This document shows, in pieces, positions 10,017 to 16,961 of a DNA stretch of 64,000 nucleotides. The stretch lies in the NCBI GenBank assembly GCA_946965045.2, contig OX337231.1, positions 3,286,001 to 3,350,000 of the forward strand. The letters are read 5' to 3'. The notes under the pieces are model-generated. The model worked only from the letters and a program-made list of their open reading frames with translations. It was not told where the DNA came from and made no database searches. Numbering within the stretch: the first letter of the stretch is position 1; the number at the start of each line of letters is the position of its first letter. A program made the position numbers and the translations under genes. Source of the DNA: Epithemia pelagica (taxonomy: Eukaryota > Protista > Bacillariophyta).

Positions 10017-10169
10017 GGTCGTTGGTGCTTTTTTGAGTCAGAAAAAAGATTTGGCCATCAAAACCGGGACTGACGTTGGTTTTTGAGTCACGCGTCTCTA
10101 CCATATGGGGAGACTCATAACCCGTATCATATCCAAGAGAACCTCCTTCCAACAAAATCGAAAGAAACA

Positions 10170-13100
10170 ATGAGCCGCATGGACGTGGACGACGACGAGA
10201 ATGAATCGATAGGGCACGACGAAGACGAAGGGAGGAGCGAACATGACGGAGGTTCCGTACCACCGTCTTCATCGACGACACCAACGCTTTCCAAATCATG
10301 GTCCGTCACTCGAAGCCATGTCCCAACCTTTTCGGGTGGAAAACTATCCCTTGGTTACTGCACCGTGAGAACCAGTAGCACTAGTAAAAGTGTGGCCAAC
10401 GATTCCGAAAAAGACAATGCACCTGAAAAGACTAGCACGGAACAGCACGACGCTCCTCGTCACCACCCCTTTTTGATTTTGCCCATTGCTGGTGATTTGG
10501 CCATTGTCGACGCCGAACGCGGAACCATGATGTGTTCGGTGCGAGGAGGTCAAGCGGGTCAGGCTTCAGTCGACAACAAGACTGAGGAGAATGACGACGA
10601 TCAAGTAGATGTCGATGCCATTACGTCGTATGCACTGTCGACAAATGATGAAATACTGATAACATGTTCACACAACAATATTCTCAGACAATACTCATTG
10701 GACAAGATTTCACCATCCACGGATTCCTCCTCCTCCTCCTCCTCGTCGTCGTCTTCTCCTTCTGTCGTTAGCTTGACCAAAAATTGGGGCAAGAGTGCAC
10801 ATACACTCCCAGTCAATTACATGCAATTCCATATCAGCAATGTGTTTGTCGCGACGGGTTCTGTGGATGGGACGGCCGGAATCTACGATGTCCGAGGTGG
10901 ATACGTCACTCATTTGTTTCGTCCCTACCAATCGGCCGACGGTGGTGGAAGTGGTCGACTTTCCGTTACGGCCATTGAGTGGATGCCAAGTATTCATGAC
11001 TTGGTCATTGCGATTGGTCGCGATGATGGGAGTATCGCGATTCACAATCTGCGAGAGGAAAAGAATACCAATGTCATTTTACTGCACGACCATGTCTCGG
11101 CCGTGACCACCATGCAATGGCCCCTTTCCCCCCAAACGACGACAAACACAATGGCAGCAAAACTGTTTCTCACGGCGGGGAGGGATGAAGTCATCAATGT
11201 ATGGAAAATGGAAGATCATATCAAAAAGAAGAAATCGTCCAAAAAGCAAAAGATTATACGATACAATCGTGTCCAAACACTACCAGTCTATGAAGCAATT
11301 GAAGGCATGATCCTGCTCCCGCCAACTACCTCCGAAAACGAGGGAGACGAGATTCTTGTGGCAACGGCCGGCAGCAAGGGGCGAATCCGTCTCTGGAAGT
11401 CGAGCATGGAGTCTCCCAAGTTGGTTTTGGCGGAGGAACAACCTGTGGAAGAAGCATTTGGTCAGGATCGTGGAGGGTATCGTAACCTACTGCTGCAAAG
11501 CTTCAACAAAAGACGCGTTTCAAAGCAGAAGGATCTCGACTGTCAGCTGATTGTGGCGGACGCGGAGCACAACATTAGTTTTCTATCCTTGCGGAGAACC
11601 CCAAAAGTTGGTACTCTGTCAACAGTTCGAACCATTGTGGGACACAATGACGAAATACTGGACATGAAAGTTATCCCCAATGCACAACAGCAGCACAATA
11701 AAAATGGTTTGGATTCGCATCGAATTGTGGTTGCCACCAACAGTGCGCAAGTTCGCATCTTTGATGTGGCCACCTTTTCTTGTGAGGTATTGGATCGCCA
11801 CACGGCAACAGTCCTCTGTGTAGACGTTAGTCCCTGTGGTCGATACATTGCCACCTGTGGCAAAGATCGAACCATGCGTCTCTGGCACGTGGATAGTCTC
11901 AAAATGGTTGCGATTGCCACGGGGCACGCAGAAGCCGTTGGCTCCACCGCTCTCTCACGGCAAACCGCCCGGTACGATGTAAAGGGCAAAGCAGCAACCA
12001 ACGGAGGAGGGTCCTTTGCTATTACTGTGAGCGTCGACCGAACAATCAAGCGATGGAACTTGCCGGGGTCCGAGATTTTGAATTCCACTGCGGCAATGGA
12101 TGGGACCGAAAACGAAATATCCCTCACATCTTTTGTCAGTGCTCGGGCACATGAAAAGGACATTAATGTTGTTTCCGTTGCACCCAATGACTCCTTGATT
12201 GCAACAGGATCGCAGGACAGGACCGTGAAGCTATGGAAAGCGTCTGACTTGACTCTTCAAGCAACATTAACTGGTCATCGACGGGGTGTGTGGGATTGCC
12301 AGTTTTCAACCTTTGACCGCGTCTTGGCCACAGCGAGCGGAGACCAAACCGTCAAGCTCTGGTCACTCAGTGATTTCACGTGTGTGAGGACATTTCAAGG
12401 CCACGTCTCCAGTGTTTTGAGAGTACGGTTCCTAAGCTTAGGAATGCAACTCATGTCTTCCGGTGCCGATGGCTTGTTGAAATTGTGGACGATACGAACC
12501 AACGAGTGTGAGGCCACATTGGATGGACACGTTGCAAAAGCGTGGGCGCTGGATTTGGCCGCAAATGGCAAGTCAATGGTTTCGGGAGGAGCGGATTCCC
12601 GAATTCTGGTTTGGACTGATACAACGAGACAAGAGGCTGAAGCCCAAAGCGCCAAAAAGGAACAGGGACTTGTGCTCGATCAGAAACTTGCCAATCATCT
12701 ACGTCACAAAGAATACGAACAGGCTTTGGATATTACTCTTGAGCTCGATAAGCCATTTCAGGCGCTTCGAGTTTTCACCGCCATAATCGAAGCGGATGTT
12801 GCTCAAGGGAACAATGGCGTAAAACCGCTGATGCGTCTTACCAAGATATGGTCAAAAGAGAAGCTTTATCGCGTCTTGAAGTACTGTAGAGAATGGAACA
12901 CGAGATCACGCAATTGCCATGTGGCCCTGTTGATCGTTCGGGCGGTCGTCTGTTCCCTTCCGGTCCACCAGCTAACCGAGATGGAAGGTGTACCAGAAAT
13001 CATGGCAAGCATTGTTCCGTATGCAGAACGTCATTTTGAACGCCTCGACCGTCTTCACGAAAGCTCATTCCTGATGGAATATGTATTGAGTTCCATGGGC

Positions 13101-13316
13101 ACTTCCGTGAAGTCTTCGGATTTCCGAAAAGATGTGGAAAAGTGGGAAAATGAATCCAGGCTTGTTCTTCCCACAAAAGGTGCCGACGGCCGAGTACAAG
13201 TGGGAGGCAAAGCTGTTGTTGGTCTCAGGGAGGACGTAGACGATAGACAGGACGAGGAGGACGTGCTGACGATCGGTGAATCATCAGATGACGACGACCG
13301 CTCCAGTTCTGGATAG
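10170..13316 (+). CDS. UTP13: U3 snoRNA-associated WD40 protein UTP13/TBL3
   Basis: Many WD40 repeats ('GHNDEILD', 'AHEKDINVVSVAPNDSLIATGSQDRTVKLW', 'GHRRGVWDCQFS'). C-terminal Utp13 domain 'EWNTRSRNCHVA...YAERHFERLDRL'. Confidence 0.93.
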   Translation: MSRMDVDDDENESIGHDEDEGRSEHDGGSVPPSSSTTPTLSKSWSVTRSHVPTFSGGKLSLGYCTVRTSSTSKSVANDSEKDNAPEKTSTEQHDAPRHHPFLILPIAGDLAIVDAERGTMMCSVRGGQAGQASVDNKTEENDDDQVDVDAITSYALSTNDEILITCSHNNILRQYSLDKISPSTDSSSSSSSSSSSPSVVSLTKNWGKSAHTLPVNYMQFHISNVFVATGSVDGTAGIYDVRGGYVTHLFRPYQSADGGGSGRLSVTAIEWMPSIHDLVIAIGRDDGSIAIHNLREEKNTNVILLHDHVSAVTTMQWPLSPQTTTNTMAAKLFLTAGRDEVINVWKMEDHIKKKKSSKKQKIIRYNRVQTLPVYEAIEGMILLPPTTSENEGDEILVATAGSKGRIRLWKSSMESPKLVLAEEQPVEEAFGQDRGGYRNLLLQSFNKRRVSKQKDLDCQLIVADAEHNISFLSLRRTPKVGTLSTVRTIVGHNDEILDMKVIPNAQQQHNKNGLDSHRIVVATNSAQVRIFDVATFSCEVLDRHTATVLCVDVSPCGRYIATCGKDRTMRLWHVDSLKMVAIATGHAEAVGSTALSRQTARYDVKGKAATNGGGSFAITVSVDRTIKRWNLPGSEILNSTAAMDGTENEISLTSFVSARAHEKDINVVSVAPNDSLIATGSQDRTVKLWKASDLTLQATLTGHRRGVWDCQFSTFDRVLATASGDQTVKLWSLSDFTCVRTFQGHVSSVLRVRFLSLGMQLMSSGADGLLKLWTIRTNECEATLDGHVAKAWALDLAANGKSMVSGGADSRILVWTDTTRQEAEAQSAKKEQGLVLDQKLANHLRHKEYEQALDITLELDKPFQALRVFTAIIEADVAQGNNGVKPLMRLTKIWSKEKLYRVLKYCREWNTRSRNCHVALLIVRAVVCSLPVHQLTEMEGVPEIMASIVPYAERHFERLDRLHESSFLMEYVLSSMGTSVKSSDFRKDVEKWENESRLVLPTKGADGRVQVGGKAVVGLREDVDDRQDEEDVLTIGESSDDDDRSSSG

Positions 13317-13645
13317 CTACGAGCTGATATAAATAAGGCAGAGAATTCATGGCTTAAAAGCAAGGTATGTAGGAGAAGGAAGTAAATCGTCGTTTAAGTA
13401 TTGTACACAAAACGGACAACAGCTAGTTTCAGCACAAAATGCGCCTGGGAGGAGACGATGTTTGCCCCAGAACATTCTAAAAATGGGTCTTGTCCCCGGT
13501 CTTCTCTAGTTCGAAACAACAACTCTGTTCCGAGGTCATCCCAAGAATTTACAGTCGAACGTGAGAACTTGGATACACTTCCACCCACATGGGGCATGTG
13601 TGTCACGTGTTCTTCCTTCCAACACTCCTAGGTGACGTCCCAAAC

Positions 13646-15220
13646 CTAACGTTTATGGGATTTCTGTTTTGGGTATGGGTGGTTTTTCTTCGGCGAATCT
13701 TTGCCTTTCGGACTTTCTGCTTTTGGTGGTGATCCTGGAGACTTTTTGGGTGACTTTGTCTTCTTCTCCTCATCATCATCGTCATCATCTGATTTCTTTG
13801 GTGTCTTGGGACTGGACGTCTTCTTTTTCGGAGCTGAAGTTTCCTTGGGTGACTTTGACTTCTTATCGTCTTCATCATCTTTCTTCTTACTTGAATCCTT
13901 GGGACTGGACGTCTGCTTTTTCGGAGCTGAAGTTTTCTTGGGTGACTTTGACTTCTTATCGTCTTCATCATCTTTCTTCTTGCTTGAATCCTTGGGACTG
14001 GACGTCTTCTTTTTCGGAGCTGAAGTTTTCTTGGGTGACTTTGACTTCTTATCGTCTTCATCATTTTTCTTCTTGCTTGAATCCTTGGGACTGGATGTCT
14101 TCTTTTTCGGAGATGCAGTTTTCTTAGGTGACTTTGACTTCTTATCGTCTTCATCATCTTTCTTCTTGCTCGAGTCCTTGGGACTGGATGTCTTCTTTTT
14201 CGGAGATGAAGTTTTCTTAGGTGACTTTGACTTCTTATCGTCTTCATCATCTTTCTTCTTGCTCGAGTCCTTGGGACTGGATGTCTTCTTTTTTGGAGAT
14301 GAAGTTTTCTTGGGTGACTTTGACTTCTTATCGTCTTCATCATCGTCGTCGTCGTCTTTCTTCTTGCTTGGACCCTTCGGACTGGACGATTTCATTTTTT
14401 TAGAAGGTGCTTTCGAGGGCGACATTTTGCTGGGGGATTTGGTAGGTTCTGGAGCCATGTAGACCGGAGTCGGCGTTGGCTGTCGTTGCGGCATGGGAGT
14501 TGGTTTGTAAACGGGTCCACTTGGTTGAGGAGCCGGTGTTGGTTGTGGTCCACACCCAGGGTGATCCGGTCCAAAGTATTGGCAGGGATCGCAGTAGTCA
14601 CTGTCTACGCCATAGTAGTCGCAGGGTTCGTGACAGTCTGGGTGACCTGGTTCATAGTCACATAGGTCACCATGCTTTTTCTTGCCACGCCAGTAGGGAG
14701 GACGATACCAAGGGAACGGAGGTCCATAGCCTCCACCGCCAATGGGAACAAGTATTACAATCATGTATGCGGCGCCTGGAGTGGGATAGACACCGCCGCC
14801 ATAGCCTGAACCATAATAGTAGGATCCTGTTCAATGATGAGCGAGAAAAAACGCGTGAGTGACATACTAAATGGAGCAAAACTCAATCCGAAGCAGTTGT
14901 AATCTGATTTCGTTCGTACCTTCCTTCTTGCCCTCCTTTTTGCCGTAGCCATAGTAGTCCATTTCCTTTTTACCGTTATCATAGTAGGATCCATAGCCAT
15001 AATGGGATCCGTAGTTGTAATAGGAGGAACCATAGTCATGATACGATCCATAGTCGTAGTAGGATTGGTCTTTCTTGCCACTGTATGGTCTCTTTCCCTC
15101 TTTCTTGCCACTATCATAGTAATCGTCGTAATAGGAGGACTCCTTCTTGCCGTAGTAGTCATCGTCGTATGCACAAGCACACGCTAGTAACAACGCAAGT
15201 CCATGCCATGCGAACCTCAT
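13646..15220 (-). CDS. Secreted silaffin/cingulin-like repeat protein (~490 aa); exons 15220-14920, 14826-13646
   Basis: Signal peptide MRFAWHGLALLLACACA, then a Y/G/K/D-rich domain. A GT-AG intron (14919-14827) joins EG|SYYYGSG in frame with the 372-aa ORF, which carries a Cys/Tyr/His motif, a Pro/Thr linker and K/S/D repeats with KxxK motifs. Confidence 0.8.
13800..14370 (-). repeat. Coding tandem repeat, ~6 x 93 bp (31 aa SSKKKDDEDDKKSKSPKKTSSPKKKTSSPKD)
   Basis: Near-identical 93-bp units are visible directly in the sequence and in the translation. Confidence 0.95.
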
Positions 15221-15959
15221 GCTGTCGGTAGGAGAGCGAAGGTTTTGTCTTTTTTGGGTACCTTGCTTGATTCTCGTAGAAAAAGTGAACCCGTGATGGG
15301 GAGAAAATTGGCGTGATGTTTGGTCGGAGTCCTGTTCGTATTGAAAATGTCTCGGTATGGCTTCTAGCTAGCATCCTTTTGAGGTTCCGAAATTTGTGAG
15401 GCGCGGAATTTAAATCCAATATGGTATATACGAATCTGGTTGTTTATATTCGTCACGCTGCTCTAAATGAAATGCGCGCGAAAGAATACTTAGGGTAGAT
15501 CCCCCAAGAAAAGTCTAAGAAACAAGTAAGTGACACTTGGCACATGATGAGAGTGGCCGAAGATGGGGGAAGGGATTCGTGTCAAGCATACATGTGGATC
15601 GTGTAAAGGTCCCCCAGATTACACATACTTAAATTTCTTTTTAACGCTCATATCCGAGATGGTCGTGTTTCATGAGCGTCACGTGGAGTGCTGCAAGCTC
15701 TCAGAAGCCCTATAATTATTCGCGCGCCTGTCGACGACTCGAGAAAGGGCGCCTTGATGCATTCTTGCTACATTTTGATCTCGAGCTGGAAATGAAGTAG
15801 AGAGGAGCGATCAAGATCAAGCTGGCTCGCTAGAGTGTCCGCGCCGTCTCCATTCGGGCGAGGGAGGAAGGCCTTCTTGCAGCAGCATGCCGCACGATCG
15901 TATTGCGAATTGCATCGGTCCTGTGTTATCCGATATACCTATTTGAGTTCATGTGAAAA

Positions 15960-16961
15960 ATGGCCAGTTCCGCTACTGAAACGACAGGCACCGCCAAAGT
16001 TCAAAAGGAAGCGACGACGACGTCAGCGGAAAGTGGGCTTCGCAATGAGAACCGCGACGATGGGCCGGATGCGCAAGACAGGGCGATGGTGGACGACGAG
16101 GAAGTCATCTTTGGTGGCGTCAAGATGAGTGCCCTTTTGACCGACAAGCTTGCGGAACGATTGGAAGAAGCATTCACCACCAATGTGCAAAGCCTCCCCA
16201 TGCTGAGGGATCCCGAGCCGCTTTTGAAAAAGTTGCGAGAGGCCTATCTCTTAAATGTGGACTTGGTGGAAGACATTTGTGCTCGTCGCATTTTTTCCTT
16301 GACTCCATTTGTTTCCGCCAAACGACGCCAGGAAGTATTGGAGCTTTTGACTTCGTTTGAATCCGTCGAAGCGATTCGTGCGGCGGCCAAGGAAGAACAG
16401 CAAAAGTTTGTCTTGCGCCAGCAACAACACACAGAAGACTCTGTCAAACCAATCTTTGATGAAAGTGAAAAACCGCCATCATCTGTTTCGGAAAAAGACG
16501 TGGAGGATCTTCGGAGAACGATCCTTTCGATGGAGAAAAAACTTGAAAAGTCAAAAGCTTTGCTGAAACAAAAGAAGAAAGATCTTCATGATCTCGCTTC
16601 GGCTACCAAGCTCTGTAAAATGGCAACAGAAACATCTGTAAATCAGGTTCACGATACAATGACAGCTCTTACCGTCGGAGCGTCTAGCCTTCAGCAAGCA
16701 GAGGAGCAGGGGCGAGAATACATCAATGAACACAAGCGAGTGAGCGAGGAACCAAAGGAAGAGGGTGGTGACGCCGACGCTCTACTGATAGACGTATCCG
16801 CGGCCGTGCGGCGGAAAAGATCCAAAATGACTCTGGAAGAACGGTTTGAAAATGACATGAACGATCCAAACCAACCACTTAGGGAGATCAAAACTATTGC
16901 AGAGTTGAAGGATGGTCCTCACCAAAGAATCCTTGTGGAGGAGAATTCTTCCCCTTCATGA
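15960..16961 (+). CDS. Probable kinetochore protein Mis12-like, with C-terminal coiled coil
   Basis: 'LLKKLREAYLLNVDLVEDICARRIFSL' resembles the Mis12 core motif (l..afdknfDkfE.y.lrniF). A coiled coil follows. Confidence 0.55.
   Translation: MASSATETTGTAKVQKEATTTSAESGLRNENRDDGPDAQDRAMVDDEEVIFGGVKMSALLTDKLAERLEEAFTTNVQSLPMLRDPEPLLKKLREAYLLNVDLVEDICARRIFSLTPFVSAKRRQEVLELLTSFESVEAIRAAAKEEQQKFVLRQQQHTEDSVKPIFDESEKPPSSVSEKDVEDLRRTILSMEKKLEKSKALLKQKKKDLHDLASATKLCKMATETSVNQVHDTMTALTVGASSLQQAEEQGREYINEHKRVSEEPKEEGGDADALLIDVSAAVRRKRSKMTLEERFENDMNDPNQPLREIKTIAELKDGPHQRILVEENSSPS

Follow-up and report, generated by a model that had tools for sequence, protein, structure and literature searches.

The analysed stretch of Epithemia pelagica DNA (contig 4, OX337231.1, 3286001-3350000; hereafter the window, 64,000 nucleotides long) belongs to a genome of 60.5 Mb in 23 contigs and carries, on its minus strand, a two-exon gene for a 493-amino-acid protein rich in Lys, Ser, Pro and Asp. 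The initial annotation of this DNA had joined two separately listed open reading frames into one candidate biosilica protein, which is our subject here. In window positions, the gene is laid out as follows.

15221..15329, minus strand: 5' leader of 109 nucleotides, delimited by the end of a spliced contig (run X12) where adapter begins
15220-15218, minus strand: start codon ATG
14920..15220, minus strand: coding part of exon 1, 301 nucleotides (100 complete codons and base 1 of the Gly codon at the junction)
14827..14919, minus strand: intron of 93 nucleotides, GT..AG, with the GT donor at 14919 and the AG acceptor ending at 14827
13646..14826, minus strand: coding part of exon 2, including the TAG stop at 13646-13648

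The proposed joining of the exons was borne out by transcript data. Four public sequencing runs were compared with window positions 13400-15400 (2001 letters), and the splice evidence comes from a single run, X12, which was filed without library kind. X12 yielded a 614-nucleotide contig (word depth 938) in which 14826 is directly adjacent to 14920: exactly 93 nucleotides are skipped, with CT..AC ends on the plus strand. Depth in the two bins spanning the intron was wholly accounted for by this spliced contig, and no unspliced contig over the intron was seen in X12; the run therefore behaves like an RNA library in which splicing is complete. The unspliced form was present in long contigs of X9 and X11, which behave as DNA. 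At 15329 the X12 contig gives way to Illumina adapter, and the 5' end of the transcript probably lies near this position; no upstream ATG occurs within the 109-nucleotide leader. The junction codon is GGA (Gly), and because the intron contains an in-frame stop if retained, the 493-amino-acid product of the joined exons requires splicing. Transcription of the gene and the modelled splicing are both shown by these data.

The whole protein contains 22.1% Lys, 14.6% Ser, 12.4% Pro, 11.8% Asp, 8.1% Tyr and 7.5% Gly (counts of the two exons added) and is built from the following parts.

15170..15220, minus strand: signal peptide, residues 1-17, judged by eye on the translation; the paralogs described below have the same layout
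14921..15169, minus strand: Tyr/Gly/Lys/Asp module of 83 amino acids (Tyr 27.7%, Gly 15.7%, Lys 15.7%, Asp 13.3%) with six GKK motifs
14663..14824, minus strand: family module (alignment A1), with a Tyr/Gly-rich run, [FY]PxPG, a hydrophobic core, GGY and a Pro/Tyr-rich run
14738-14764, minus strand: hydrophobic core I-[VF]-[AI]-L-[VLI]-P-[IV]-G within the family module; here the nonapeptide MIVILVPIG, in a Gly/Tyr/Pro stretch
14552..14686, minus strand: acidic six-Cys/His/Tyr/Pro module of 45 amino acids with two C-x-Y-x(1-2)-P-x-H-P-x-C units
14405..14551, minus strand: Pro/Thr/Ser-rich linker of 49 amino acids, 34.7% Pro
13649..14404, minus strand: blocky polyampholyte tail of 252 amino acids, with six 31-amino-acid units in which Lys/Ser/Pro stretches alternate with Asp/Glu blocks of 4-9 residues
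13805..14344, minus strand: tandem DNA repeat underlying the tail (Tandem Repeats Finder: 93-nucleotide period, 5.8 copies, 96% matches), equivalent to the six 31-amino-acid units

Much of the architecture in the initial annotation, namely the signal peptide, the Tyr/Gly/Lys/Asp domain with GKK motifs, the short hydrophobic stretch, the Pro/Thr stalk and the roughly six 31-residue repeats, was recovered at these positions. The N-terminus reads as a secretory signal, with a basic n-region, an 11-residue hydrophobic core and an A-x-A site (A-C-A) before the predicted cut. It is followed by Tyr and then a strongly acidic stretch (Y-D-D-D-Y-Y-G-K-K), and the product contains no hydrophobic stretch of transmembrane length. 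A Lys triplet separates the stretch with the hydrophobic core from the Cys module, whose six cysteines are spaced 9-4-10-3-10 and accompanied by four His (13% Cys, 9% His and 18% Asp). The six-Cys motif of the initial annotation thus stands as two units, whereas the repeated pattern it gave, C..Y.P.HP.C, was off by one residue. AlphaFold2 gave the N-terminal part of exon 2 a mean predicted local confidence (pLDDT) of 50.6 and no confident fold, and the encoded product is largely disordered.

The tail has the most distinctive composition, with 35.3% Lys, 21.4% Ser, 15.5% Asp and 11.5% Pro (89 Lys and 54 Ser against 49 Asp plus Glu). Its computed net charge is +41, or -67 with a phosphate on every Ser. 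Using a blob-based asymmetry measure, we found the charge blocks to be more segregated than in shuffled sequences (z = 4.1), with none of 2000 shuffles reaching the observed value. By sequence charge decoration the tail did not differ from shuffles, a measure that is uninformative here because net charge dominates it. Variable codons among the five near-identical units are six synonymous and four non-synonymous, a synonymous excess over the neutral expectation and a weak sign of purifying selection. The tail had been described as carrying KxxK clusters, a label that does not hold: its Lys residues lie mostly in KK or KKK runs and in [ST]PKK motifs (11 copies), and the 17 K..K matches in exon 2 are of the KKSK or KSPK type. 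Under a loose pentalysine definition (at least five Lys within 12-14 amino acids) there were 113 windows, but these consist of consecutive Lys. That the intron length equals the 93-nucleotide repeat period is probably coincidence.

A few sequence differences touch the gene. Over 13467-14071, short contigs from run X1 (metatranscriptome, organism A) match the 3' end and the repeats at about 95-98% identity, one with an in-frame 6-nucleotide deletion; a near relative or other strain seems to express the gene in nature. At 14395, a long X11 contig is one base short in a Lys-Lys homopolymer run (poly-A, 14392-14399), a deletion seen in neither X9 nor X12. If real, this loss would shift the frame ahead of the repeat tail and create a naturally tailless allele, and it may be a sequencing or assembly error. 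Amino-acid-changing differences also appear in further samples of this organism: G>A at 14385 (Ser to Phe) in X9 and X12, and C>T at 14646 (Gly to Asp, within the Cys module) in X11.

A six-frame search of the genome with the N-terminal part of exon 2 returned two weak matches, and a third locus was recovered with the protein of one of them, L004, as query. The three paralogs are listed below.

L004:667-1695 (contig 7, about 40.4-41.4 kb), plus strand: single-exon gene
L003:799-1686 (contig 17, about 278.4-279.3 kb), plus strand: single-exon gene
L008:1429-2160 (contig 5, about 2884.5-2885.2 kb), minus strand: single-exon gene

All three are single open reading frames of 244-343 amino acids, rich in Tyr, Gly, Asp and Lys, with a signal-peptide layout, Trp after the predicted cut, GYG runs and both GKK and KSGK-type motifs. 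They share with the target a module of about 50 amino acids, in which a Gly/Tyr run, [FY]PxPG, the core, GGY and a Pro/Tyr-rich run follow one another and 16 columns are invariant. Target and L004 match over this module with a BLASTP E of 7e-6, and a profile built from alignment A1 found exactly four loci in its own genome (E 9e-25 to 5e-16). A fifth profile match, on contig 16 (E = 0.5), was weak and unrelated. L003 and L004 also contain an 8-Cys module that shares C-x3-P-x4-C-x3-C-D-Y with the 6-Cys module of the target (BLASTP E = 0.06, shuffle p about 0.01-0.02); L008 lacks it. The order of modules differs, with the paralogs placing the Cys module early and the hydrophobic core near the C-terminus, where they end in short Lys/Gly/Ser clusters, followed in L008 by R-M-L. 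The long Lys/Ser/Pro/Asp repeat tail occurs in the target alone among the four. What is new here is that the short hydrophobic motif is the core of a module of about 50 residues common to three other putatively secreted Tyr/Gly/Asp/Lys-rich genes. The target is the fourth member of a genome-restricted family that shares this module and, in three of its members, a probably related Cys module.

Searches beyond this genome gave little. Pfam contained no domain for either exon or for two of the paralogs, and a word-indexed protein search with the N-terminal part of exon 2, whole L004 or the C-terminal module of L004 returned no matches. Neither two metagenome scans (no credible relative), the ESM Atlas queried with exon 2, nor an exact-product look-up of the 372-residue open reading frame found a counterpart. 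The initial annotation had suggested a homology search with the Cys motif, which turned up no credible relative outside the genome: an exhaustive HMMER search of 1.84 billion representatives with a 66-residue Cys module gave a single match, P0001, which was a spurious sum over ten unrelated repeats. The structure of the pleuralin PSCD domain (Pro/Ser/Cys/Asp-rich) is present in the PDB, and a PDB sequence search with E up to 10 returned chance matches to alpha-glucosidase only, with no similarity to that domain. For L004, the ESM Atlas offered a sub-threshold lead to an oomycete "mating-induced protein M96-3" cluster with a score of 0.79, which shuffled sequences also reach. Little weight attaches to these blanks, since not even the products of this genome were recovered from the protein collections.

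We favor, at about even chances, the interpretation that the gene encodes a secreted, largely disordered protein of the cell-wall organic matrix or one associated with biosilica. The protein would enter the endoplasmic reticulum and follow the secretory route. Its Tyr/Gly-rich region and short hydrophobic core could make it self-associate into an insoluble matrix, to which oxidative cross-linking may contribute, while the Cys module might form up to three disulfides and the Pro/Thr linker could be hydroxylated or glycosylated. In the tail, Lys residues (possibly alkylated), encoded acidic blocks and phosphorylated Ser would together make a zwitterionic polymer, one that could self-assemble, bind polyamines and silica, and help to template or coat silica as native silaffins do. 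Such a protein would most likely sit in organic matrix bound to or embedded in silica.

Several observations support this placement in the wall. The RNA is spliced, the N-terminus resembles a signal peptide followed by an acidic stretch, and the genome is that of a silicifier, since it contains at least 11 full-length silicon-transporter genes (PF03842). The silaffin-like screen that led to cingulins, as excerpted in PMC3478156 from Scheffel et al. 2011, combines a signal peptide with minimum contents of 18% Ser and 10% Lys per 100 amino acids; the 252-residue tail, at 21.4% Ser and 35.3% Lys, lies above both thresholds as quoted there. SKS.K, which is enriched more than 20-fold in silica proteomes (bioRxiv 10.1101/2021.09.18.460806), occurs six times in the target, and the 113 loose pentalysine windows point the same way. 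Further support comes from the paralogs, which carry KSGK-type motifs and, in L008, a C-terminus whose Lys/Gly cluster and R-M-L resemble that of the Thalassiosira pseudonana girdle-band protein Tp12162 (PMC9650480 supplement), a feature of the paralog and not of the target. Proteins of the silica proteome (soluble, silica-associated) are typically low in complexity, disordered and mostly without detectable homologs, so that an orphan of this kind has precedents. Among these is AC3362 of Amphora coffeaeformis, a Tyr/Lys/Pro-rich orphan chosen as an adhesive candidate and then localized to the ammonium-fluoride-insoluble, biosilica-associated matrix of the cell wall (PMC4220933). The non-random charge blocks and the synonymous excess among repeat units are also consistent with a wall function.

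Several points weigh against this interpretation, and a role in the frustule is a plausible guess. Stretches rich in Lys, Ser and Pro, with SPKK and acidic blocks, typify nuclear and nucleolar proteins too. The signal peptide, which matters because the [ST]PKK pattern is common in such proteins too, was judged by eye only, and an aromatic residue, which diatom plastid predictors weigh positively, follows the predicted cut. The canonical motifs are missing as well. Repeated KXXK with X being Ser or Gly and spaced 1-6 residues apart, the motif-based definition of silaffin-like proteins (PMC5501833), has no counterpart, as K[SG][SG]K occurs in neither exon. There were no matches to the strict pentalysine pattern K..K..K.{1,2}K..K (bioRxiv 10.1101/2021.09.18.460806). 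RXL is absent from the whole 493-residue protein, as the initial annotation had remarked, and silacidin-like release of acidic peptides is therefore not indicated. The 17-residue leader motif of CinY1-3 (GTNKTL...FPGRPTP) is not found after the signal peptide; the likeness is limited to a loose [FY]PxPG farther along the chain. Finally, the absence of relatives in other diatoms is weakly based, as the databases searched missed proteins of this very genome.

Because the canonical motifs are absent, we do not file the target as a cingulin, silaffin or silacidin; it is silaffin-like by composition only. With silaffins it shares an N-terminus that reads as an ER signal peptide, a Ser/Lys-rich region of at least 100 residues as the excerpted screen describes it, the character of a repetitive disordered orphan, and both charges in one molecule. 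It differs in that its Lys residues lie in KK/KKK runs and SPKK, not in Lys-Ser/Gly-Ser/Gly-Lys arrays, with neither strict pentalysine nor RXL, and in that much of its negative charge is encoded as Asp/Glu blocks and does not come from phosphorylation alone. The silaffin-like part of the initial annotation's label is supported by composition, within the portion of the screen quoted in PMC3478156, and by the six SKS.K motifs. Its proposal of a single polypeptide that provides polycation as well as polyanion is not a new principle, because polycation and polyanion in one molecule is the accepted model for native silaffins (PMC4557024). Silacidins likewise have Asp/Glu/Ser-rich blocks in a secreted repetitive precursor; they are short acidic peptides freed at RXL, whereas the 4-9-residue blocks of the target sit between Lys blocks and lack that site.

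The "cingulin-Y-like" label does not hold beyond a likeness of composition. Compared by eye, CinY1-3 and Tp12162 (PMC9650480) are secreted proteins that, like the target, set Lys clusters among Tyr/Gly/Asp-rich stretches and have a short hydrophobic patch between a Tyr/Gly run and a Lys cluster. In Y-type cingulins, KXXK-containing regions (PMC4557024), termed lysine-enriched regions in PMC9650480, alternate with Tyr-rich regions. The Tyr-rich module of the target has GKK, only two K..K and no KSGK, and thus no such alternation; CinY1-3 differ further by their leader motif and KSGK-type lysine-enriched regions, and cingulins offer no counterpart to the Cys module or the long tail. There is also a general likeness to AC3362, AC4076 and AC1077 of A. 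coffeaeformis (PMC4220933), which are modular orphans with a signal peptide, GYG runs and Pro-rich modules. AC4076 and AC1077 alternate Tyr/Asp/His blocks with GKK- or KGK-type blocks much as the target's family does, and AC3362 has about 8% Tyr and 12-14% Pro over the whole protein, as does the target. By eye, these proteins share no motif with the target and lack its hydrophobic-core module and 31-residue Lys/Ser/Pro/Asp repeat.

The comparison with Amphora also bears on the best-surviving alternative, that the protein belongs to secreted extracellular matrix, mucilage, adhesive or cell coat outside the silica and its tightly bound matrix. In the extracellular space its tail would then either associate with anionic polysaccharides or promote complex coacervation. 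We regard this as possible, though it is not the outcome we expect. The features used to choose the Amphora adhesive candidates (signal peptide, disorder, richness in Tyr, Gly, Lys and Pro, and blocky charges) are all found in the target, which lacks every canonical silica-targeting motif; published CinW2 and CinY2 constructs without their specific targeting regions stay intracellular or take the default secretion route. However, the sole Amphora candidate that could be localized was in the cell wall and not in adhesive trails, and Amphora reportedly lacks Dopa (PMC4220933). Nor was a known adhesive-trail domain found by Pfam, with GDPH adhesive-trail proteins considered from the literature only.

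An unlikely but more specific variant of the wall interpretation is that the four-gene family follows a route to the wall without KXXK, pentalysine, RXL or cingulin-leader signals. The Gly/Tyr and hydrophobic-core module would then be the assembly or targeting element, and the polyampholyte tail gained by the target would self-coacervate and template silica without a separate polyanion.

Less probable still is some other function after secretion: the Cys/His/Asp module could bind metal, for example, or the protein could serve in polycationic defense or surface conditioning or belong to the wall of a particular life-cycle stage. The 13% Cys, 9% His and 18% Asp of the module would suit metal binding, and the oomycete mating-induced protein lead for L004 would suit a life-cycle role; that lead scored within the range of shuffled sequences, and no homology or fold supports a function of this kind. 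We consider it very improbable that the signal peptide is non-functional and that the protein is nuclear or nucleolar, with SPKK and acidic blocks binding DNA or histones in the manner of histone H1 tails or nucleolin. The 11 [ST]PKK motifs alternating with Asp/Glu blocks fit such a protein, the likeness of SPKK being a matter of general knowledge. Against it stand the N-terminal 11-residue hydrophobic core and A-x-A site, the six cysteines in a His/Asp/Pro-rich module and the Tyr/Gly-rich wall-type region, which are atypical of nuclear proteins, and the three paralogs that have the same signal-peptide layout without the tail. Targeting to the plastid or periplastidial space has hardly any probability. 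In its favor, the predicted cut is followed by an aromatic residue (Tyr in the target, Trp in the paralogs), and an aromatic +1 position is the key feature of diatom plastid presequences (PMC4329603). Import, however, calls for a transit peptide that is net positive and poor in negatively charged residues (PMC4329603), whereas the target has Asp-Asp-Asp at +2 to +4 and a net acidic charge over the next 80 residues.

Few diatom silica-shaping proteins are known. Because they are mostly species-specific orphans of low complexity, every validated example enlarges the parts list and the body of rules for targeting proteins to silica. The target would be informative in that it has the composition while every canonical targeting and processing motif is missing. 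If it is a component of the frustule, as the wall interpretation would have it, those motifs are not necessary and the 50-residue module becomes a candidate new signal; if it is not, the protein would be a useful negative control for composition-based screens. Its repeat tail is a ready-made peptide for asking whether silica can be precipitated with encoded acidic blocks in place of phosphate or silacidins.

The target and a gene for a UTP13-type WD40 nucleolar protein (Pfam Utp13, E = 6e-40) have their 3' ends facing each other. One X12 contig extends from the 3' end of the target into this neighbor, and the two 3' ends are therefore close or overlapping. The flanking features are given below; a bacterial promoter and terminator scan is irrelevant for E. 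pelagica.

10083-13316, plus strand: convergent gene for the UTP13-type WD40 nucleolar protein
15960-16961, plus strand: unannotated open reading frame of 333 amino acids on the 5' side of the target

Elsewhere in the genome, contig 11 carries two tandem pairs of silicon-transporter genes (1001834-1006098 and 3159754-3166955), and the set of such genes looks large.

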